Source: Dicyema japonicum (Eukaryota; Animalia; Dicyemida). Taken from it: DNA of 64,000 bases. This document shows positions 700 to 61,285 of this stretch, one piece after another (the first letter of the stretch is position 1; every line of letters starts with the position of its first letter). The notes beneath the pieces were generated by a model. It did not search any database. It worked only from the letters and a program-made list of their open reading frames with translations, and had not been told where the DNA came from. The stretch spans positions 1,082,796-1,146,795 of the forward strand of contig RDEW01000010.1 of NCBI GenBank assembly GCA_011109175.1, written 5' to 3'. Position numbers and translations under genes: made by a program.

Positions 700-900
700 T
701 GTTATGCTCTTTGCCTTCTTTAATTCCCTAGAGGCATCTTGGGATCCACCTAAGTTAGGAGACCCTCATGGCCGTATCCAAAAACGGTCTCTCTTTTCCA
801 TATTCCAGTGGAGGCGTTCAGTAAGATGACGAACATAGATGGACCTGATGCTTTGAAAGGATGCGTCCGACTCCGACTGGGGGAGGTATTTCAGATATAT
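700..900 (+). repeat. Diverged copy A of SINE-like pseudoknot repeat family
   Basis: ggcatct(733-739)-t-gggatcc-acc-taagtta-gg-agaccct...ccaaaaa-cggtctc, then ccagtggagg; colinear with the copy at 3850-4177. Confidence 0.6.
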
Positions 901-1394: not shown

Positions 1395-1520
1395 ATGCTT
1401 CGTGCCTTTCTTCGTTCATTTAGCGTCAAGGGATCCACCTGTCTCAGGAGGTGCCCAGTGGCAGGATAGGATCAGAAAGGATCATTTGCTCTCTCTAACT
1501 CTACTGGATTATTTCATGGA
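1395..1520 (+). repeat. Diverged copy B of SINE-like family
   Basis: gggatccacctgtctcaggaggtgcccagtggc...cagaaaggatcatttgctctctctaactctactgga, matching the core of copy E. Confidence 0.65.
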
Positions 1521-1799: not shown

Positions 1800-2010
1800 T
1801 TCTGCTCTTTGCCTTCTTCGATTCCTTAGAGGCGTCCTAAGATTCATCTAACTTAGGAGACACTAATTGCCTGGTCGGCATCCGAAAATGGTCTTTCTTT
1901 TCCTATTCCAGTGGAGGGGTACGGTAAGGAGATGGGTGGACTTGATGTCTGAAAGGATGCCCCTCTTTCCGACCAAGGGAAGTGGATAAAACCTGTTTCA
2001 GGTATATCCG
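1800..2010 (+). repeat. Diverged copy C of SINE-like family
   Basis: ggcgtcc-taa-gattc-atc-taactta-gg-agacact-aat-tgcc-tggtc-ggca-tccgaaaa-tggtct; pyrimidine-rich leader ctctttgccttctt shared with copy A. Confidence 0.6.
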
Positions 2011-2589: not shown

Positions 2590-2685
2590 TAGGAACTCAT
2601 CCAATGAAGTGGGACAGATCAAATGATCCTTTTCCGTACCATTCTGATACTAGGCGTCACCTAAGATAGCAAAACTCTAAGGATG
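2590..2685 (-). repeat. Partial copy D of SINE-like family
   Basis: Reverse complement reads ttaggtgacgcctagtatcagaatggtacggaaaaggatcatttg. Confidence 0.6.
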
Positions 2686-3849
2686 TTTTTCATCTCCCTG
2701 ATGGATCTAACATTTGAGGACCTTTTCAGAAAGTGGATCGAATCCCGAGAGCCTTGAATCAGCCAATGACCGCCCTTTTCCTTTATGGTGATTCTTGACT
2801 CTATCGCAAAAATGTCTACTTAGCTTTGTGATCATTAAAAGTCTTGTCTTTTTTCAGTCGGTCTGGAATAGCTGGGGGACTCATGAGACTTGGAAAACCA
2901 AAGCTCTTAGCAAAGTGATTTTCGGATGCGCGTAGGATCGAATCTCGTCCCTTTAAGATATTGTAATCATCCCACGATTCTACAAGTTTCGGTATCGCAA
3001 AAAATTAAAGGGAAATTATTATCATAATTTTAATACAAATTTACTTTAATCTTCCACGATTAAGTGCGCGTGTTCCGACAAAGTAAATTATCATTAAGAA
3101 CATTCGAGAATAGATAATTCCCAAATTTTCCCCAACGAGATTTGCCCAAGTTCCCCCAAATTTGGCAGGCTTGATTCGAACACAGACATAAGTGACATTA
3201 TCCTTCTTTATTTCAAAATTTTGGATTTCCGACATATACTGAGGACATTAAGAAAAAGAACGGGAGGTTGTATCCACCTTGATGAGATAAAGTGATTCAT
3301 TGAAATGGTTGGACGCGAAAGGAAGTGAGAAGCGAGACATGAAGCTTTCAAAACTTGGTTTGTAGTATTGGGGGTAACTCTCAGCAATTCCTAATTATTA
3401 TTTGTTTCCTTCCTTATTTTGATTGTACTAAAATTATTAATTTGAAAAATTTAATAGTGTTAGTTAGGTGCATCACCAGATACTAAAATTTTCTTATTAT
3501 TGGCAACATCCAAGTTTTCTCAATTTTTGAGTTATGAGATTTGAACTCGGATCCCACGTGTAGCTTACGCTTCCTGTGATCACATGACGCCATTATAGTA
3601 AAACAAAAAAAATAATGAACAGAGGGAATGAAGAGAAACTTCCGATCAAGTAATTAGGGATGGAACCAAAATTAACTATGAACTCCTAACCACTAAACTA
3701 CCTGGTCACTAGAACCTTAAAGCTCTTTTCTGCAGAAGAAACTTTTCTAAATTCATCATTTAAAATATTATTCCAAAATATTTTAAATTCAACAAAAAAT
3801 TACCAATAAATTATAATTATTTCAAAAGTCAGCTACAACATGACCAAGT

Positions 3850-4177
3850 GATAAGGCCGCGTGGAGCCATGTGGTGCTGCGTGGTCAATTGATTTAAATT
3901 TTCTGCTTGCTTGTCTATTCCTCCTCTCTTCCTAATAGAGTGGCGTCATGTGATCCACCTGTCTAGGTGACGCCCAGTGCCAGGCCGGCATGAAAAAGGA
4001 TCATTTGCTCTTCCCAACTCCACTGGAGGGGTTTCCACAACTGCATGTAATGGACGTCTTACCTTTTATGCTGATTCCGGATGGACACTGTTTCTGTAGA
4101 AGTGGAAACTGGATACACTTAATTAGTTGTTTACTTTAACTTCTTTCTCGGTGTATCCTGGGTTAATAAATAATAAT
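3850..4177 (+). mobile_element. Full-length SINE-like retroposon (copy E)
   Basis: 13-bp TSD AACATGACCAAGT at 3837-3849 and 4178-4190; 3' taataaataataataa tail; 3' hairpin ggatacac/gtgtatcc; close match to copies at 25290 and 60954. Confidence 0.85.
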
Positions 4178-4559
4178 AACATGACCAAGTTTGTCGAAAG
4201 TATCGTCCAGTTTGCAAAAACATGTAAGAACGAAACTAATACGACTCTTTCATGCTTCTATGCTCTCACTGAGGGGTGGCTCTTAGCTACAACTCTCAAT
4301 CATATTTAAGTGCCTGCGACTTCTTAAATGAACTATTCAGTAGTTGCTATGCAAGGAAGAGAGGCTGGGTCTGCTAGCTACAAATGTATAAAGTTTTCCC
4401 TATGAGGATGTGATCAGATGTGAACACTAATCTACTTTGTCCAATATTTTACCTCTGAATTTTTTATAAATCAACAAAAAATTCGGAATATTTAATTTTT
4501 AATTTAATTTATTGAACCAAAACCACCGTCATATCCAAAATAAACAAAATTTCAGTGAT

Positions 4560-4850
4560 CCCAGCCAAACTCAACAATCTCCGCATCTTTTCTCAGTGTT
4601 CCGACTGCGTCTCTGCGCATTCTCCTGGCATGACGATTCTCCATCGAGTCTCGCGTGGAAGAGCCGTCCAGGGGAACTCATCTAGATGGTCGTTGACAAA
4701 TGGTTATTTTTGGAGTCACTTTGACTTGTATCTGACGCCACCATACAAGGCGAATCACATGACGCACGCTAATTAAGTGAATTAGGAACAGACGACAATC
4801 AGAATCTTCAATCAATTAGCCACGAAGCACCACATGGGGACACGCTGCCA
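4560..4850 (-). repeat. Related copy F (shared head and pseudoknot, different 3' body)
   Basis: Reverse complement: catgtggtgcttcgtgg head, then tgcgtca-t-gtgattc-gcc-ttgtat-gg-tggcgtc...agtc-aaagt-gact-ccaaaaa. Confidence 0.6.
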
Positions 4851-5342: not shown

Positions 5343-6592
5343 ACTTGATAAAATTTATTTTCTATGATAAATTTATAACTCCAAAATAGAAGCTGAAATA
5401 CATTTAAATTAGTACGTTTAAGATAATAGACACGATTTCATATTTTCTTAGATATTTACGGTTATCTTCCACTATGGCTTGCTGGGATTTCGAAGGTACT
5501 TTAACCTAATCAGGGTTAGATTTCAGAAACATAAATAAATTTGTAATTTTAAATAACAACCATTGAACACACTGAAAAGGTACAACGAAAATTTTATTTT
5601 ATTTAAGTTTAAATAAAAAATTTATTTTAATATTTAATAAATTTAAATTTAATATAAAGTAATAAAATATATGATATTTAATTTTCTATGTAATTTTGAT
5701 TGAGTATTTATTGTTATTACAATAACTAAATTCTCTTCCTATTTTGCTAGATGGGACTCTAACCAAAATATCTGTGCATCCGATGCTTCTTTATTTTAAA
5801 CTTTTTTCTCATATCTCTTGAGTTTATTAGGCGAGAAGTTATACTTATCTTATGAAAGTAAAGACATCTTATGTACTTATTCTATGCCATAGAAGACGTT
5901 ATTAGCTCAGCCATCGACCAATTAAGCAATAGATTATAGGGTTAGCGAATTAAAGATATCGGATATATGACGGGTTTGTCTGTCAATTTCATCCTAGCGT
6001 TTAATCCAAACATGTTGAAGTTGAGAAAAGTGCACATCGGAAGAGTTTTAACAAGGACTTTTGTGACTTTCAATCGCAAATTTATCTAACGGCTCAACTT
6101 ATTCAACTCAACCAGCCGTTTATTTGGAAAGCAATTTACTGTTTGTGACTCATTTGAGCCGAACAGCTCTACTATTCAAAACTTTGATTTTAATAACCCA
6201 AGTCCATTGTGTCGTTGTCTTGAAATCAGTTGAAACCCCTTAGCAGTTTTCGCCCGGATTGATTTGAAAGCTATTATGTCGCGAGCGCTACTTGCAACTA
6301 TTGCGCTACTTGCAATATCGATTTTTTGAATTTTTTGAATTTTTTTTGAATCTATGAAAATTATTCTTTTGGATTAAAATTCTAATTTTTAGTAATATAA
6401 AATATTAATTTTAATGTATAAAATTAATATTTAAACTATTAATTCTAATTGTAAAATTGTTACTGTCACGCTTCTCCCACGTTGTTGTGGTGCTTCGTTT
6501 TGTGCTAATGCTTATTCCATATTATTTTGATTGTCTTATATTTTCTCATTAATATATTAGTGGATTCATCAAATAGAGTTTAATAGGTTTGC

Positions 6593-6868
6593 ATTTAGAC
6601 ATGATAAAGACATGAATTTCTTGAGAAGAAAAAACAGAAGCACGTCACCACTTCAACCAAAAAGACCAAGAAACACACTTCCAACCTGCTTAAAAGATGA
6701 CTACGAACAAAATAGTCGTAAATTGGTGACAGCGGACGATCTGGATGATGTTCGAATGAGGGCCAGGAACAAGATAGCGTGGGCGAGGAGGATGGCTGCA
6801 AATCATGGCTCAAGCGAACCCCTTTTAGGGCCACGCGAAAGAGCTCTTAACTGACTTAAATTAACTAT
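6593..6868 (+). mobile_element. 5'-truncated RTE LINE 3' fragment nested in the TIR element
   Basis: KRPRNTLPTCLKDD...DDLDDVRMRARNKIAW resembles an RTE C-terminus; 10-bp TSD ATAGGTTTGC at 6583-6592 and 6869-6878. Confidence 0.75.
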
Positions 6869-7045
6869 ATAGGTTTGCGTAAAAAAGACCATGGAACAAA
6901 TCCCTCGCTAAAGTTAGGGAAATTTGAGTTTCCCTACAGTGAAAAAGTGAAAGTCGTAGATATATTGTCTAACAAGCGAATGACACTTCAATCAAATGAG
7001 GGACATAGCGAGATCTTCCACATGAGTCGCGTTAAAAAGCTTTAA
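6869..7045 (+). pseudogene. Remnant of a Gypsy/Ginger-type integrase C-terminal (GPY/F-like) module
   Basis: 58 codons IGLRKKDHGTNPSLKLGKFEFPYSEKVKVVDILSNKRMTLQSNEGHSEIFHMSRVKKL*, resembling the GPYKVVEVLS...VFHVSRLK pattern. Confidence 0.5.
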
Positions 7046-7323
7046 AAAGAAGTGACTTACCTTTTCTTATAAATAAAATTTTTTTTTTTTGAATTTTTTG
7101 TCTTAATTGAAACTTAAATGAATACAATCGTATAACCCGGAATTTTTAATAGTTTAAAATATTGAAAAATTAAGAGTTTTATTGTTGAAATTAATTTTTA
7201 AATTATTTAGATGCTTATCAGTATTATTAATAGTAAGATAATTTAAGAATTTAAAAAATAAATTCAATTTTATATTTTTTAAAGCATAACATAAATCTAC
7301 ATATAATTTTAGTTTCATGTTTT

Positions 7324-8733
7324 TTGAGTAAAACTGGTTTCTTTAAAAAATTTCGACAATTGTCCAAAATTCAAGAGATAGATCCGGCATCTTTTATTCC
7401 GATAGAAGTACAAGATACAAGAAGTAGTTATAAAGAAAAGTCGAAATTGAGTGGTCCCTTGTGTCATCCTATAACGCTGGAAGAAATAAATGCTGCAATT
7501 AAGGGTTGCAAAAATAAAGCACCAGGGTGGGATTTTATCCCAATGAGTATTTTCAAGAACGCAGGCCCAATTTTGATTGAGTGCCTAAAAATATTATATA
7601 ATTCTTCTTGGAGTTTTGGTCATGTTCCAGCTTATTGGAAACGAACAATTGTACGCATGGTTGTGAAAAAAGGAAAGCCAAGGTCAAAAGCAGATAGTTA
7701 TAGGCCAATTAGCCTAGTCTGCTCAATATCGAAAGTTATGGAAAAAATTGTTTTCAATCGTCTATCAAGGCATGTTGAGGATAATAATTTTCTCTCTGAT
7801 AATCAACTGGGATTTCGGCATAAAAAAGGGACTGGAGATTGCTTTAAAGAGCTAAGATCTGCAATCGAAATTTCACGAAATAAAAAGGAATTTCTTACAA
7901 TAGCATGTTTGGATATAACAAAAGCGTTTGACAGTGTTTGGCACTTTGGACTTGTTGATACGTTGTCAAAAGCAGAAATTGGGAAAACTGCGTTATTATG
8001 GATAGAAAACTTTCTTTCAAAAAGAAAGTCATATATACGTGTTGGAAATTTAATTTCAAAGAAAATTGAATTGCGAAGAGGAGTTCCACAGGGTTCAATT
8101 CTCAGTCCGCTACTCTTCAATTGCGTAATGAGAGATTTGCCGAAAACAGAAAGCGTAAATAGTCAAATGATTATTTATGCTGATGACATTCTTGTGCTTG
8201 ATTCAAGCATGAATAAACAAATTTCATGGAAAAGAGTGGAATCCCATATTACTAAGATTGGAAAGTGGTGCCAAAACAATGGGTTGACTCTATCGAGGGA
8301 AAAAACAACAGTCACTTGGATTGCAAGTAAAAGAAAAAATATTAATCAATGTGTGAATACTGGGGATATAAAAATCTCTGAAACATTGAAGTATCTCGGA
8401 TTGTTGATAGACCGAAGAGGATCTTTCAAGGAACATATTAAAACACGAAGAAAGAAAGCTACAGGAATGTTGAAATCTTTAATTCGATTTCATTTGGAGC
8501 CTGAAACTTTTCTTTTTGTGTATTCGGCGTGTGTTGAACCATTCTTGATATATGGTTATCAAGGATGGTTTAGAACAAAAGAAAGTGATGTCTTTGTCAA
8601 AAAATTGGAAAAGTCCAGAAGATTTGCGATTAAATTGGCATATGGACTGGACTTAAAATCTAATATCGAAGAGGATTACGACCTGAAAGTCAGAAAGATA
8701 GAAAAATTATTACATCACTTATGGAAAATGTGA
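7324..8733 (+). CDS. Non-LTR (Jockey/I-like) reverse transcriptase, RT and thumb only
   Basis: Uninterrupted 469-aa ORF with KAPGWD, YRPISL, QLGFR, LDITKAFDSVWH, GVPQGSILSPLLF, YADD, KYLG; no endonuclease. An ATG at 7317 would be in frame if the T-run were one base shorter. Confidence 0.9.
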   Translation: MSKTGFFKKFRQLSKIQEIDPASFIPIEVQDTRSSYKEKSKLSGPLCHPITLEEINAAIKGCKNKAPGWDFIPMSIFKNAGPILIECLKILYNSSWSFGHVPAYWKRTIVRMVVKKGKPRSKADSYRPISLVCSISKVMEKIVFNRLSRHVEDNNFLSDNQLGFRHKKGTGDCFKELRSAIEISRNKKEFLTIACLDITKAFDSVWHFGLVDTLSKAEIGKTALLWIENFLSKRKSYIRVGNLISKKIELRRGVPQGSILSPLLFNCVMRDLPKTESVNSQMIIYADDILVLDSSMNKQISWKRVESHITKIGKWCQNNGLTLSREKTTVTWIASKRKNINQCVNTGDIKISETLKYLGLLIDRRGSFKEHIKTRRKKATGMLKSLIRFHLEPETFLFVYSACVEPFLIYGYQGWFRTKESDVFVKKLEKSRRFAIKLAYGLDLKSNIEEDYDLKVRKIEKLLHHLWKM

Positions 8734-9912
8734 TGTAATTTTTGGGGTCCAAACGAAGTAGAGACATGTGGTGTCTCATAAAATGACCCTACACGATGAA
8801 TACAAACCCACTTAATTAGTTTTGGTTCAGGTTTTGGTTTCTTTACAGTAATTAGTTTTGGGGTTTGTTAGAAAATAAAATTTGTCTTGTCTTGTCTTTA
8901 AAATGGTTCGATTTGTGAGTGTCTTAATACTACTCGTTTAATTTCGAGCAAAAAAAATCGATATTGCAAGTAGCGCATAGTTGCAAGTAGCGCTCGCGAC
9001 ATATTATGCTTCGAAACCACTATTTCTACGATCATACAACAATACCCATGTTGGATATAAAGCCGCAGTTTGTTACATAGTGTTTTCGAAAGGAATCTAT
9101 GATTTTATTTAAAACCTGGTGATCACTAGAAAAAAAGACAAAATATGGACAAACAGCTAGGTGATCCCAGTACCAACGCCATATTATGTCTGGGACATTG
9201 GGGAAAAGAACTTCTGACCGATTGCCTGGGACATAGATATGCAAGTGGGCTTCTGCCTTTTTCACAATATCGGAAGGAACCAGCTCGCATCTACATCTCG
9301 TAGTTTCCGTGAGTAGTAGTTTCCGTCACATCCAAAACGGGACTATTAGCTCCAAGGGTGGATAAAAGCCACGTAACTTACCTGACTCGAGCGGTTTCAG
9401 TGTAACAACTATTACCACGGAGGTCAGTACTTGCTAATTTGAATCACCAGGACAATGTCAATAGATCCCTAAGTCATCAGTTGTTCCAAAGACAAATTTT
9501 GAAGGATTCTCATTGTGGGTGGCAATTTGTCACCGACCCTTTTAGTAGGTACTTTACAATAAGAAAAATCACCGGTAACGTAAAAAAACAGTAAGATTCC
9601 CCGATAAACCCAATTTGGACAATTTCCTATTAACAGTTGTCATTTAAACTGCTATCGCAATAATAAGATTTCTCATGAAATGAGTCTCTTCAAGATACCA
9701 AAGAGAGGTGATAATGGACCAAATTCTGGAAAGCTCTGATTTAAATAACTCGATTTTTCAAACTGATTCTTGTTGGTCCTGATCATCTGAGTTGATTGGA
9801 AAGACGACAAGACATCTCTTTCCTCGGAGACATTTTTGACCTGTAGAATCCATATTTTAAATTATTATTAATTAAAAAAAATAATTATCTCTGAAAAAAA
9901 TTTAAATTTAAT

Positions 9913-12130: not shown

Positions 12131-12474
12131 ATAAAAATGAATTGAACAGAGAAAATATAACCATCGGATGCGGAAGAAGAGTAATAATTTCAGTATCTTG
12201 AAAAGAGGAGACCTGCAAAAAGAATCTCAAATACAGAGCATCTGGTTGACCTTCACCGAAGTCAGGGTTTTTTTAATTAATGTCTATAGTTATTATAAAT
12301 TATTGACGGGGACGAAAATTTTCTCATAGAGCGAAGCGAATAAAAAGTTGATACACTGATCTAGGCAATCTAACACGGAGAAAAAATTGGAGATAGGCTG
12401 AGAATCTTTTTGGGTTCGAATCCCGACAATACCATTGGAAAAAAATGATAAGGACTCATGTCTTCTTCAAATCT

Positions 12475-12560
12475 TGTGAAATGTCTCAGGAGACACCAGT
12501 CCCTAACCGACATCCAAAAAGGATTTCTCTTCCCTAATCCACTAGAATATTTCCCACAAT
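12475..12560 (+). repeat. Partial copy G of SINE-like family
   Basis: tgtctcagg-agacacc-agtc-cctaacc-gac-atccaaaaa-ggattt-ctcttccctaatccact. Confidence 0.55.
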
Positions 12561-23100: not shown

Positions 23101-25289
23101 GGTTTCCATAAAAAATAAATTATTGTGAGTAATTGACGACAAATAATAAGTTATTAATTATTTAAAATTTATATTAAATATTTTTTTATTTAATTAAATT
23201 AATAAACTATTTATAAAATAAGGTATAATTCTTTTGTGGTGACTGTTATGTTTCAATTAACTACTTTTGATGTGTTCCAAGCAATTTGTTCTACAAATCC
23301 TAACACTAGCTAACTCAAATCCCTTATAACAAAGATTGGGGAAATGATAAAAGAACGCTTACTTTATCTTTCCCTTGTAAACCGTGGGGGAGGACTTTCT
23401 GGGTGTTACATTCCATAAAAAAATTGGAAATGATACTCGAAAATGTTGAGTCTGAGCATTTAAATTAAGTCAATTGCCGCCTGCTTATGCTTATGGTGTT
23501 CAGTCGGTCACTGACTAATGCTTACTTATCCTAATAATGTTGATGATACTGTGAGTTTGCTTGTATCTATTTTGAGTGCAAGGAATATGTTAATAATGTT
23601 GAGTCGAAGGGGGTTGGCTCAGATTTTTAAAATGTGCAGGATTTTGTACAGAAATGATTCAATTTCCTCGCATTATATGAGATCTCTTGGGTCTGTATTT
23701 AGAATTTAATTTATTTTAATAAAGTTGTATTTTTTGTTTTGATTTTTTGAGAATTTTATTAAATTAGCAATTTTTTAATTAAGTGTCTTTGTGGTTTCTT
23801 TTGCAATTTTGCCGTAACTGCGGTTTATCGATTATTATATGATGTACTTGGATTTAATTTATTTAAAGAAACAATAACCGAGGTTCATATAATAGCTTCC
23901 CTGACTGCGTGGTTATTCCGTCTCGGGAGCGCGAGCAAGATTCGTTCATATAGCCAACAGCGCTTACTGAGATCTCCTGTTCGCGTAGAAATCCTATTCC
24001 CTAGACGACCCAGGTAATCCAGTGTCGAAGGTGCAAGGGACCAGGACGTTTAAACCCGACTTTTTATCTTGTAGATTGTAGACAAATTTATTATCATAAC
24101 ATCTGGCTGTTGATACTGTCCGGGTGATAAATAAAATTTATCATTTGAATCACCAGAATTTTACCAATCCGGACAGCGCCGATTTCCTCAAAAATATTTC
24201 TAGCCAATAAGAAAAAAAAACTTTAAACTATAAGAGGCCGAGGGATCGATCGTTTCCTTATGGTTAAAGTTTGGTTAAGAGTAAGGTTGACTTCTCTCTA
24301 TTTTGTTCCTTGAAACAAAACTTAAAGATTGTTGATTCAAGTGATAAACTAGTCTTTTCTGAAGATTAGTAAGTATCGAAGCATTTCGGCGGATCACTTG
24401 TTTTATCTTAATTGCTGTTGAGACATCAGGAATCCTTGGCCCATAAAGTGAAGATCTAGTCGTCTGATCGACTCAATGATCCAAAGGGTCACCAAGGATC
24501 CATATGAGACCGGAGTATCTCGATAGCTATCATCAGAGGAAACAGCATGGCCATTCAAACTTCCTAACGGAAGAAAAAATCTTTTGAACTTGTGTGACAA
24601 GCGGATCAACTGACGCCTCTTAGAATTTGCTGAAGGGAGAACTAGAACGGAATCATACCTTCTCTACTAAAGTCAAAAAAATGTCTAAAGAGTATCATAA
24701 ATAATAAATGTTGTGAACAATCACCACTATCTTTTTAAAACAACCAACTCTTGAGTTTTTTACCTATCCACTACAAACAAGTTGAAACTAAACTCCCCCA
24801 GGAACATGATGATTCGCATAACCTGTAACCAAGATGAACTCCTTCCTCCTCACTTCTATGTCTTTGTAATCAAAAAAACAGAACCTACAACCTCTGACAT
24901 TTGAACGAACAAGCAAATCGATGTATTCAGCGATAGAAACTGCAGAGTCCTATATGAGGTCTTCTACATATCATATGGACGTTGATACAAGAAAGCTGAA
25001 TACACTATCAATATTTATGGCCACGTGGTCCACTTCAATAACTGTGAAAATTCAATGTATCCTGCAAAATATCACAAATATAAAAAATTGGTGGATGAAA
25101 AAAAATATATAAAAATTGGTAATCACAAATATAAAAAATATATAAAAATTGGTAAAAACCTGTGAGTTGCAAGCAACATGCCATATATGCATGAATGTCT
25201 TATGCATTGACTAATATAATCAAATTTGAAAAGCTCGATTAATTACATCAACAATCAGAGCATCATTGTAGGACATATTATGCCGCACT

Positions 25290-25535
25290 CCAGTTTCCAC
25301 TTCTACAGAAACAAAGTCCATCTGGAATCAACATAAAAGGTAAAAGACGTCCATAGTTGCAGTTGTGGAAACCCCTCCAGTGGAGTAGGGAGAGCAAATG
25401 ATCCTTTTTCGTGCCGGCCTGGCACTGGGCGACCAAGACAGATGGATCACATGACGTCACTCTAATAGGAACAGACGAACAAACAGAAACTTCAACCAAT
25501 TAACCACGAAGCACCACATGGCGCCACGCGGCTAA
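25290..25535 (-). mobile_element. SINE-like copy H (3' tail missing)
   Basis: High identity to 3850-4177 and 60954-61285; P4 gtgcc-aggcc-ggcac followed by gaaaaa-ggatca. Confidence 0.8.
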
Positions 25536-36434: not shown

Positions 36435-36506
36435 CCCGAGGTAGCTCAGGGGTAGAGTGGGAGACTGTAGTTCTCTAGGTCCCCGGTTCGAATCCGGGTC
36501 TTGGGA
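36435..36506 (+). tRNA. tRNA-Tyr(GTA): tRNA-Tyr (anticodon GTA), intronless
   Basis: Cloverleaf: acceptor CCCGAGG/TCTTGGG, D arm GCTC/GAGT, anticodon stem GGAGA/TCTCT with loop CTGTAGT, T arm CCCGG-TTCGAAT-CCGGG, discriminator A. Confidence 0.92.
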
Positions 36507-48739: not shown

Positions 48740-49984
48740 TGGATACGTAAAAGTGAGGACAAAAATTGGTTATTTAATGGGAAATATTTTTATTAAATCG
48801 GGGTTTTTGCAGAGAACCTTCGATAGTCTCGTCCATCTATTTGCATTTTCTGCCTTTATGTTATTGTCGATCTCTTTTCGTATTTTTCTATTCTCTCTGT
48901 TGGCGATTTTACCATCTTTAGATTATTTCGTTCTCTGATCAGACGTTTCGTCGTTGTGTTGAAACGCTTTGATGACGTAGGTTGTCTCCCCATAGGAATG
49001 TAATTCTTTTTCGCAGCGTTTATGGTGGAGTTGAACCATTTCACTAATTGTTCGACGGAGGGAGGAGTGGGGAAATTTAATAGTCCAATACAATTATCGA
49101 CGTATTCCTTGAATCCTCTCCAATTCGCAAGGCTGTAGTTAGTTATCATTGGGCATTGTCCTTTTATCCGTGACCTTGTTTTGACCTCCAAAAATTGGAT
49201 TGTGGTCACTCTGGTGTCATACTTCACTGACCAGTCAGTAAGAGGGGCCAAGGACGGTGGTGACAATGAGATGTCGATAGAAGAAGGTTTATTGTTACGT
49301 CGAGTAGGTGTTCTTGTATGAGATGCAGGATCGTTGAGTATACATAGGCTGTGTAGGTCCTCAATTATCATCTTCTCTCTTTTGTCGTAGGTTTGTCCTG
49401 TCAGCCACAGTGGGTGCTTCGCATTGAAGTCACCACAGATAATCACGTCCTTTAGTGATGCGAGAGGAGTGAGTCTGGGGGCACTGGACGAGAGGAACTC
49501 AACGGTGGGAGATATGCGTTGACAATTATTATTGATAGTCTTGGGAATCGTACTTTGGTAACCAAAAGTGCACGATTTCCATATCCTTTAAGCATAGTGT
49601 AAGCACTGTTAGTTAAGTCCTCAAACGGAATGCCGTTCCGGATCACTGTGAGAAGACCCCCACCAATTCTGTTCACTGTGAATTACTGTGAACCCGGAAA
49701 TACGGATGTTGAATTCTTTGGAGAAAGTTTAGACTCTTGAATTAGCAACAGATCGATGTGATTTTCTTTCACAAATGTCCGAAGTTCGAGCATCTTGTTC
49801 TTGATTCCATTTATGTGATTGGACTATTCTGGCTGGTCCAGGGTTTGCCTCAACGTCTCCGCAGCGGCGCAGGCCTTCCTTATTGGTCCACCCGTGAGGA
49901 TAGGGAAAATGTGGTTCTTTTTTCCAAATGCCACCACGTCGTCGGCGAGCCACATGACATTATCACCATCGATTTTTACTAGGG
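48740..49984 (-). mobile_element. Ingi-like LINE 5' part: 5' pseudoknot, 2A peptide, APE endonuclease
   Basis: Begins CCCTAG; GDVEANPGP; LLLIQESKL, GGGLLTVI, NAYLPP, CGDFNAKHPLW, SSIDIS; frameshifted. Confidence 0.8.
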
Positions 49985-49989
49985 AGTTT

Positions 49990-55560: not shown

Positions 55561-55679
55561 GTTCAAATGGTTGTTCTTAAAGGAGTAAATGTTACCTTAC
55601 AAGTATATAACCAAAATTTTGTATTTCCTGATCAATGGATAAGGTTTCTGCTTGAAAGTATTCATCTGACCTTGACCTT

Positions 55680-55860
55680 TTCCAATTCCTGGATCCACCT
55701 AACTCAGGAAAAACCCAATGCCTGGCCTACATCCAAAAAGATCTCTATCTCCTTACTCTAATGGAGGGGTTCCAATGTTGGAAGATAATTGGAAAGGAAG
55801 CGATGCTTAGAAAGAATACGTCTCACTTCGACCAGGGGAACTGGGAGATGTAAACGATAT
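55680..55860 (+). repeat. Diverged copy I of SINE-like family
   Basis: ggatcc-acc-taactca-gg-aaaaccc-aatgcc-tggcc-tacat-ccaaaaa-gatct...tggagggg. Confidence 0.6.
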
Positions 55861-60953: not shown

Positions 60954-61285
60954 TAATTTAATTTATTAACCCGGATACACGAGAAAAAAGTTAAGGTAAA
61001 CAACTAATTAAGTGTATCCAGTTTCCACTTCTACAGAAACAGAGTCCATCCGTAATCAACATAAAAGGTAAGACGTCCATTACATGCAGTTGTGGAGACC
61101 CCTCCAGTAGAGTGGGGAAGAGCAAATGATCCTTTTTTCGTGCCGCCCTGGGACTTGGCGTCACCTAGACAGGTGGATCACACGACGCCACTCTAATAGG
61201 AAGAGAGAGGAGGAACAGACAAGGAAGCAGAAAAACTTCAACCAATTAACCACGCAACACCACATGACGCCACGCGGCTATTTAT
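60954..61285 (-). mobile_element. Full-length SINE-like retroposon (copy J)
   Basis: 13-bp TSD TACAAAGAACGAT (60941-60953) / TACAAAAAACGAT (61286-61298), one mismatch; TAA-rich tail; same body as 3850-4177. Confidence 0.85.

Follow-up and report, generated by a model that had tools for sequence, protein, structure and literature searches.

A fold in hepatitis delta virus helix order shared by LINE 5′ ends and an abundant short retroposon of Dicyema japonicum

How does a short retroposon come to carry, in its middle, a module with the helix order of the hepatitis delta virus (HDV) ribozyme, and does that module cut the RNA in which it lies? The question arises at positions 3850-4177 of a 64,000-nucleotide (nt) stretch of the genome of the dicyemid Dicyema japonicum (contig RDEW01000010.1, positions 1,082,796 to 1,146,795; hereafter the window), where an earlier note, made from the letters alone, had proposed a ribozyme-bearing family resembling short interspersed nuclear elements (SINEs). 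We think it probable that this element, here copy E, is a retroposon that depends on a long interspersed nuclear element (LINE), is composed of LINE 5′ parts, and carries a selected fold of HDV topology, which may serve there as a non-cleaving mimic.

The element and its LINE 5′ parts

Copy E is a recent insertion of a non-autonomous retroposon that is abundant in the genome; the element was put together from LINE 5′ sequence, not from a small-RNA gene. Direct reading of the sequence bears out the 328-bp element with a 13-bp target-site duplication (TSD) and a TAA tail that had been described: the 13-mer aacatgaccaagt at 3837-3849 is identical at 4178-4190, and the (TAA)n tail reads ttaataaataataataa. 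The element is short and non-coding, has a high copy number, TSDs and an A/T-rich 3′ tail, and in these respects is a SINE or non-autonomous LINE-dependent retroposon; the proposal that a LINE mobilizes the family is supported. Open reading frames (ORFs) in the element are short only, that of family A, to which copy E belongs, being AUG-UGA. A head derived from a tRNA, 5S, 7SL or snRNA gene is absent, as the element has no Rfam match at E ≤ 10.

Our whole-genome searches covered 67,542,437 bases in 377 scaffolds (~36% G+C), and 360 kb of sequence were read closely; besides family A, three further families, B, C and D, rest on two to six decayed copies each. Genome-wide, a whole-element query gave 1,981 first-look candidates, of which 40 were scored and are 94–97% identical, and the module start, searched as an exact 28-mer, was found 307 times, compared with 0 for a control pattern. 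Candidates number 863 for family B, 33 for family C and 734 for family D, and a profile search of the 360 kb turned up the 63-nt module ~25 times in diverged form, spread over at least four other families. When 32 copies were aligned with their flanks, many separate TSDs were found; these abut 5′ extensions of 5–6 bases that differ by subfamily (ataagG, gattt(t)G, aaataG), after which the conserved family-A start is GCCGCGTGGCGCCATGTGG.

Where does the middle of the element come from? The 63-nt module at 3942-4004 (helices P1 to P4, described below) has its homologue at the 5′ end of LINEs of this genome. The LINE head at L038:268 reads GGCGTCATGTGGTCC...GGACC. Where P1 and P2 join it has an ATG, from which an ORF extends past the 2A motif ...LLLAGDVEQNPGP and reaches LQLNINGIRGK, where an apurinic/apyrimidinic (AP) endonuclease begins. 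Further LINE heads lie at L038:4955, L045:6456(-), L014:2135 and window 49985(-), and tblastn finds reverse transcriptase (RT) similarity ~1.5 kb downstream of LINE heads. The heads at L014:2135 and window 49985(-) belong to copies of one LINE, which start at the same base and carry a minimal module that lacks P4. Within LINEs, the module lies within ~10 nt of the element's 5′ end and the start codon is in the joiner J1/2. About 30 nt past the module (TTTGCTCTTCCCCA.TCCA) are also common to one LINE and the SINE. Since both the module and this downstream stretch are common to the two, the middle of the SINE is a captured LINE 5′ end. The earlier note had suggested a relation to LINE 5′ ends of the kind known from L1Tc/ingi and their short derivatives, and the presence of the same module at LINE 5′ ends, with 2A downstream, confirms it.

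That these heads belong to LINEs is judged from the 2A motif, from the start of the endonuclease and from tblastn matches to RT ORFs; Pfam gave no matches on the fragmentary ORFs of the decayed LINEs. The 2A leader does not place these LINEs in the Ingi/Vingi clade, as it is not clade-specific: such leaders also occur in the CR1, L2, Rex1 and Crack clades (PMC3708506).

A second LINE 5′ signature lies in the head of the element. The head sequence CGTGGCGYCATGTGGT agrees with a LINE 5′ 16-mer at 15 of 16 positions in the family-A consensus and exactly in older heads, a score that 3 of 500 shuffles reach. The head is without the 3′ pairing partners of the module and folds as a ~13-bp hairpin with AUGU in its loop. 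The pattern GGCGTCATGTGGT, searched genome-wide together with its 20 upstream bases, was found at 102 places, in the contexts ...AATTAAAACGT, ...TTATGAAACGT, ...ATGTTAGCGT, ...TTTTCTCGT and ...GCCGCGT; the AAACGT context precedes LINE heads, and the GCCGCGT context is that of the SINE head. Elements with this pattern fall into subfamilies, each with its own 8–11 conserved upstream bases (AATTAAAACGT, TTATGAAACGT, ATGTTAGCGT and TTTTCTCGT), and several head-sharing lineages, LINE or SINE, therefore coexist. The ~92 nt of leader before the module, entered as a caveat in the earlier note, are explained in that the first 20 nt of the leader are the LINE 5′-end signature. The element bears what read as two LINE 5′ signatures in tandem, of which the one at the start is reduced and the other, 89 nt into the element, is complete. 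With a 5′ part that comes from a LINE 5′ end (head 16-mer, complete module and ~30 nt downstream), it resembles in this part the bipartite derivatives RIME, NARTc and SIDER. Families A, B and D have the head in common at 77–80% identity, versus 51–67% for the module, a difference suggestive of module swapping between SINE heads and different LINEs.

The 3′ part gives fewer matches. The body has no similarity to other SINE families or LINEs in the 360 kb read, and the tail has no significant similarity to the four decayed LINEs within reach. The sole tail match, an exact 13 nt in the 3′ untranslated region (UTR) of the window's RT-bearing LINE, is equaled in 5 of 1000 shuffles. The word CACTTAATTAG(TT) recurs in the family-A tail region (4114-4126), at window 8809-8821 and, on the minus strand, in a family-D linker near 4775-4790; the second of these sites is within the 3′ UTR of the RT-bearing LINE (7324-8733). 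The recurrence may reflect a common 3′ recognition word or be due to chance. The RT ORF of that LINE (469 amino acids, 7324-8733) is inside positions 6277-9001, which had been described as an element bounded by terminal inverted repeats; inverted repeats gcgcgagcgctacttgcaac... are present at both ends.

Pairing and covariation of the module

In copy E, P1 is formed by 3942-3948 with 3968-3974, P2 by 3950-3956 with 3998-4004, P3 by 3957-3959 with 3966-3968 (ACC/GGT, or CCT/AGG) and P4 by 3977-3981 with 3987-3991, and an A-rich joiner occupies 3992-3997. All four helices pair as they had been drawn from the letters, and the strand order is P1-P2-P3-P3′-P1′-P4-P4′-P2′, the nested double pseudoknot of HDV. 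The variants listed earlier also hold up. P4 is found as GTGCC/GGCAC, as GTATC/GGTAC (copy at 2613) or as AGTC/GACT (copy at 4690), and pair 7 of P1 is swapped to T-A in the copy at 727. The joiner C, for which copy E has T (T3991), is present in most copies, accounting for ~70% of exact 32-mers and 78–83% of family k-mer depth. We considered whether the T-type joiner marks a dominant young subfamily and rejected this, since pristine 32-mers are ~70% C and ~30% T.

Is the fold under selection as RNA? Standard pairs were counted against a control in which the 3′ partners were slid by 1–3 columns, and double changes were compared with 500 shuffles. In a MAFFT alignment of 23 diverse copies, 77.3% of cells pair (34–43% when slid), and 32 cells are double-changed compared with 14.7 ± 3.4 in the shuffles, none of which reached this number. 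A covariance model that held P1, P3 and P4, and not P2, gave 51 matches in 287 kb; among these model-aligned copies, 80.9% of cells pair (35–49% when slid) and 69 are double-changed, versus 23 ± 4 (0 of 500 shuffles). P2, which was outside the model, is paired in 80.5% of cells, with double changes in four of its seven pairs, and across the four helices double changes occur in 19 of 22 pairs. Among the aligned copies, P2 is found as GUGAUCC/GGAUCAU, GUGGUCC/GGACC and GUGGUUC/GAACCAU, and P4 as GUGCC/GGCAC, AUGCC/GGCAU, AUGUU/GACAU, GUAUC/GGUAC and GGUAC/GUAUC. Subfamily changes within family A also preserve pairing (U-A to U.G in P1; G-C to G.U in P4). G.U wobbles (116) outnumber A.C cells (64), which indicates RNA of the sense strand. 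Pair counts and shuffles over both kinds of element, SINE and LINE, thus show that compensatory changes maintain the nested pseudoknot in its HDV helix order, as the earlier note had proposed.

Coding does not account for this conservation. The ORF that the module opens in LINEs is not kept in the SINEs, where it is AUG-UGA in family A and the AUG is lost in families B and C, and the helices are kept; conservation of the module therefore does not come from coding. The G-to-A change that makes the family-A stop codon is itself matched by GGACC to GGAUC in P2. We conclude that the module is very probably a LINE-derived, selected RNA fold. Another structure, the 5′ hairpin GUGGCGUC-AUGU-GAUCCAC, is pairable in 81% of cells, with 8 double changes compared with 4.3 ± 1.8. 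With so little covariation, we rejected it as the main structure; it may be a competing conformer.

Cleavage, mimicry and other readings of the fold

If the module has the helix order of a ribozyme, does it cut the element? We find no evidence of a working ribozyme in this element, contrary to the proposal that the family bears one. The check that had been suggested, against HDV-like covariance models, returned no match to the SINE at E ≤ 10; the Rfam models tried (HDV_ribozyme, CPEB3, drz-Agam, HDV-F-prausnitzii and others) were equally silent at that threshold on five LINE-head, family-B and family-D loci. The first pair of P1 is G-C in 26 aligned copies, G.U in 4 and A-U in 4, and is G3942-C3974 in copy E. 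The joiner J1/4 is nearly always CA, which could pair with UG in the loop L3 of families A and D; in families B and C and in the LINE heads, L3 offers no such partner, and P1.1 has no covariation in the aligned copies. In most families the joiner C lies 5–7 nt before P2′; copy E lacks it, as does the minimal LINE head at 49901-49985. The canonical distance of the catalytic C from P2 is 3 nt.

The genomic record of 5′ ends bears on the same question. Local family-A copies, taken from a random 264 kb, begin at consensus positions 1, 1, 1, 1, 2, 4, 11, 38, 48, 67, 71, 206, 240 and 288, and none of these ~14 starts at G1 (position 89), the first base of the module. Genome-wide, no copy truncated at the predicted cleavage site was found among at least 307 exact module starts. 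In only three module-start copies is the base at -1 other than T (the base at -12 being A or T), and each of these retains the leader; as this filter is estimated to catch about half of any copies truncated at G1, there would be fewer than ~5 of them. LINE and SINE families alike keep 3–11 conserved bases, including CGT, upstream of G1, and the LINE templates that were copied were therefore not cut there. On another scaffold, L006 carries 10 nt of copy E's 5′ flank, gataag and the whole leader, so that copy E must have been transcribed from upstream and reverse-transcribed uncut. Copy E, with T at the position of the joiner C, is the source of this daughter. SINE templates were thus not cut at the 5′ edge of the fold. 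At L006:1440-1520, the daughter has a small duplication of target sequence, attttagttttttaat being present twice between the TSD (aatttctata) and the transduced flank, and the 5′ junction is untidy. A drop in depth over the leader, which might have been a sign of head-less copies, was rejected: short contigs break at an indel in the linker. The sequence record does not show membership in the HDV-like ribozymes, and self-cleavage in the SINE is unlikely.

A working, non-canonical HDV-like ribozyme that cuts between 3941 and 3942 would separate the head from a LINE-like RNA or release the SINE RNA where it is co-transcribed with host sequence. The module does have the helix order, a P1 of 7 bp, a P3 of 3 bp and an A-rich J4/2, a C is at the joiner in ~70–80% of family copies, and the same fold stands at LINE 5′ ends, as in L1Tc, whose own ribozyme is non-canonical with a single-pair P1.1 (PMC3185411). 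Against these stand the silence of the Rfam HDV-like models, a first P1 pair that is mostly G-C, an unconserved P1.1, the spacing of the joiner C, the conserved bases upstream of G1 in all families and the lack of any G1 start. Copy E and ~30% of pristine copies have T at the joiner, and copy E still gave a daughter. We consider this reading unlikely. A catalytically active HDV-fold variant that does without P1.1, has a short L3 and a long A-rich J4/2, begins P1 with a G-C pair, and is either slow or turned off through the AUGU hairpin would be slightly less likely again; if it exists, LINEs and SINEs would carry a conditional self-cutting device that genomic copies cannot reveal. The inverted repeats could instead act as DNA, in a promoter or as targets of transcription factors, for instance through the E-box-like words CATGTG/CACGTG. 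In the head, where the 3′ pairing partners are missing, the 16-mer CGTGGCGYCATGTGGT is conserved, and Pr77 of L1Tc is an internal promoter (PMC3383444). However, compensatory changes are found in four helices, the excess of G.U over A.C is strand-specific, and P4 is free in sequence yet paired, unlike a protein-binding DNA site. We regard this as very improbable for the module; for the 16-mer, a DNA-level role can coexist with the RNA fold.

It is also conceivable that the module is a passenger without a role in the SINE and seems conserved merely because SINE masters took it again and again from LINE 5′ ends, in which selection, for instance for translation start or processing, would hold the fold. 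SINE modules resemble LINE heads as much as they do the modules of other SINE families (family D is the closest to LINE heads, at 59–64%), the head is better conserved than the module, and LINE 5′ fragments are common in SINE middles (PMC5786205). However, four successful SINE families (~2,000, 860, 730 and 30 candidates) were amplified with P1, P2 and P4 intact, the subfamily changes of family A preserve pairing, and recurrent capture of the same 63 nt would itself suggest usefulness. This reading we consider doubtful, if less so than a ribozyme.

We return to the reading we favor, a LINE-dependent retroposon with a non-cleaving fold. The LINE machinery would use the A/T-rich tail for target-primed reverse transcription, of which the 13-bp TSD would be the trace. 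The module in the SINE would be kept as a structural mimic of the 5′ end of LINE RNA and, instead of cutting RNA, would engage the LINE protein or translation-coupled assembly of the ribonucleoprotein. The head, with its copy of the 16-mer, may supply a start-site or promoter function, as Pr77 does in L1Tc, so that head and module would divide a labor that Pr77/L1TcRz of L1Tc combines in one sequence.

Several observations weigh against this explanation. Mimicry or recognition as the role of the module in the SINE is what we infer, and this step is tentative, perhaps right but not probable. Because SINE modules stand at about the same distance from LINE heads as from one another, part of the covariation may stem from LINEs, with repeated capture. 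Most of the diverged rows of our alignments are single decayed insertions and not family consensuses, and kinship inflates the shuffle statistics. RNAalifold predicted no structure for the 23 decayed copies and, for 8 representatives, only the competing 5′ hairpin and P4; the nested part of the fold is of ordinary stability (z = -0.72). The partner LINE 3′ end was not found in the 360 kb of readable sequence, and the link between tail and partner therefore stays a candidate. In addition, the four sequence runs are contigs whose depth over the flanks is flat and DNA-like, and they mark neither starts nor ends. The same genomic record would be left by a ribozyme that is slow or conditional and whose cleavage products are never reverse-transcribed.

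How does the element compare with known systems? In L1Tc and NARTc of Trypanosoma cruzi, a promoter, an HDV-like ribozyme and 2A occur together at the 5′ end (PMC3185411, PMC3383444). The Dicyema elements likewise have a fold in HDV order at the 5′ end of a LINE without ORF1, a 2A at the N terminus of the long ORF, short non-autonomous derivatives that share the fold and a 5′ sequence that appears to have a dual role. The core is non-canonical, as it is in L1TcRz with its one-pair P1.1, and a competing conformer may exist here as well. Unlike L1TcRz, which cleaves at +1 of its element in vitro (PMC3185411), the Dicyema fold has 3–11 conserved bases upstream of the position at which it would cut. 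SIDER2 of Leishmania and T. brucei carries two tandem Pr77 signatures (PMC4035085) and, like the element here, is a short degenerate retroposon in which one HDV-type signature is internal. However, both signatures of SIDER2 are full length and signature I cleaves in several species, whereas the first Dicyema signature is a 16-mer with a hairpin, and the host is a metazoan.

SINEs with a middle taken from a Vingi or RTE 5′ end are known, such as SINE2-1_AMi, SINE2-1_ACar and RTE-derived SINEs, and a ribozyme in the middle of a SINE would truncate it (Kojima 2018, PMC5786205). The plan of SINE2-1_AMi, a head followed by a stretch copied from a LINE 5′ end (Vingi-2_Gav positions 2-74), is also that of copy E. 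These SINEs have tRNA or 5S heads and were described without analysis of fold or covariation, whereas the Dicyema head is LINE-like and the captured piece is a covarying pseudoknot. The canonical HDV-like ribozymes (HDV, CPEB3, drz-Agam, R2) have in common with the module the helix order P1-P2-P3-P1′-P4-P2′, a 7-bp P1, a short P3 and an A-rich J4/2, usually with C. Unlike them, the module matches no model, has G-C for the G.U first pair, no P1.1, another L3 and another spacing of the C, and yields no G1 starts.

HDV-type folds at LINE 5′ ends and LINE 5′ fragments in SINEs had been described separately, and here they are joined. The captured LINE 5′ piece in the middle of the SINE is a covarying double pseudoknot, which, by the genomic record, is not used to make the 5′ end of the element. 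The retention of an HDV-type fold for a task apart from 5′-end processing, such as recognition by a LINE protein, translation-coupled capture or a conformational switch, can be put to the test here, and the element is an animal counterpart of trypanosomatid SIDER2 with its tandem Pr77 signatures. New here are the head as a second LINE 5′ signature, the finding, genome-wide, of no copy that starts at G1 and the identification of copy E as a source gene. The D. japonicum assembly comprises 67.5 Mb in 377 scaffolds with 36.7% GC and 49% repeats (PMC6736024), and the SINE families reported here add to the repeats that make up ~49% of the genome (PMC6736024). The genome paper (PMC6736024) does not describe these SINEs, and we found no paper that does.

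Copies in the window and further observations

Coordinates of the element, its parts and its relatives in the window are collected in Table 1. The two further copies that the earlier note had placed at 60954-61285 and 25290-25535 were recovered by blastn with slightly different limits, and partial copies were found besides these two long ones. All the older copies that it had listed were recovered by the module covariance model, that at 12462-12533 only weakly (E 0.27). A TTTT run is present in the linker of copy E.

Table 1. Parts of copy E and related sequences, in window coordinates
Feature	Position	Strand	Basis
5′ TSD copy aacatgaccaagt	3837-3849	+	direct reading; identical 13-mer at 4178-4190
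5′ extension gataag, subfamily-specific, before the conserved head	3850-3855	+	32-copy alignment
Head; contains LINE 5′-terminal 16-mer CGTGGCGYCATGTGGT at 3860-3875 (copy E: A at 3865)	3856-3899	+	alignments, LINE-head comparison
T/C-rich linker	3900-3941	+	alignment; similar linkers in families B, C and D
Module, very probably LINE-derived, HDV-type helix order	3942-4004	+	pair counts, homology to LINE 5′ ends
Post-module stretch TTTGCTCTTCCCCA.TCCA..., common to LINE 5′ coding leaders	4005-4038	+	LINE L038:4955-5060 versus SINE consensus
Family-specific body	4039-4150	+	32-copy alignment
3′ end ...GGTGTATCCKGGGTTAATAAA(TAA)n	4151-4177	+	direct reading, 32-copy alignment
3′ TSD copy	4178-4190	+	direct reading
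Old module copy, family C	727-801	+	covariance model, 49.7 bits
Old module copy, relative of family A	1416-1495	+	covariance model, 70.8 bits
Old module copy, family C	1825-1905	+	covariance model, 68.6 bits
Partial old module copy, P4 GTATC/GGTAC	2613-2676	-	covariance model, 25.3 bits
Family-D SINE copy, head as in copy E; module 4690-4772, P2 GTGATTC/(G>T)AACCAT	4500-4850	-	alignment, covariance model
Weak decayed module copy	12462-12533	+	covariance model, 14.8 bits, E 0.27
Third family-A copy, 85% identical, 3′-truncated	25289-25532	-	blastn, alignment
Decayed-LINE 5′ end: minimal module (no P4) with ATG, then 2A DVEANPGP, endonuclease start	49901-49985	-	sequence reading, covariance model
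Old module copy, family B	55676-55755	+	covariance model, 57.3 bits
Second full-length family-A copy, C-type joiner, 91–93% identical, 12-bp TSD tcgttttttgta / tcgttctttgta	60961-61278	-	blastn, alignment

Upstream of the old copy at 1416 are words like GGTTCGATT, for which a tRNA-like head was considered and rejected, as ARAGORN and Rfam give no tRNA. In the L019:1823 region, a family-A copy has four extra G between the TSD and the 5′ extension (atgtcgacc|gggg|ataagG); these may be an untemplated addition at a capped 5′ end, hinting at pol II transcripts. The unique flank of copy E at window 3606-3846 is present without differences, at a depth of ~2, in run X5 (2015), which carries the label of another organism; the differently labeled sample therefore contains DNA of the same species, perhaps from host tissue.

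Two further RNA matches were met. At L036:8582-8637 (-), just 3′ of a family-D SINE copy, is a weak match resembling a C/D-box small nucleolar RNA (Rfam sR1, 25 bits, E 0.022), with GATGATG and CTGA boxes. In the window, the only Rfam match at gathering threshold is a tRNA gene at 36435-36506 (+), with 59 bits.

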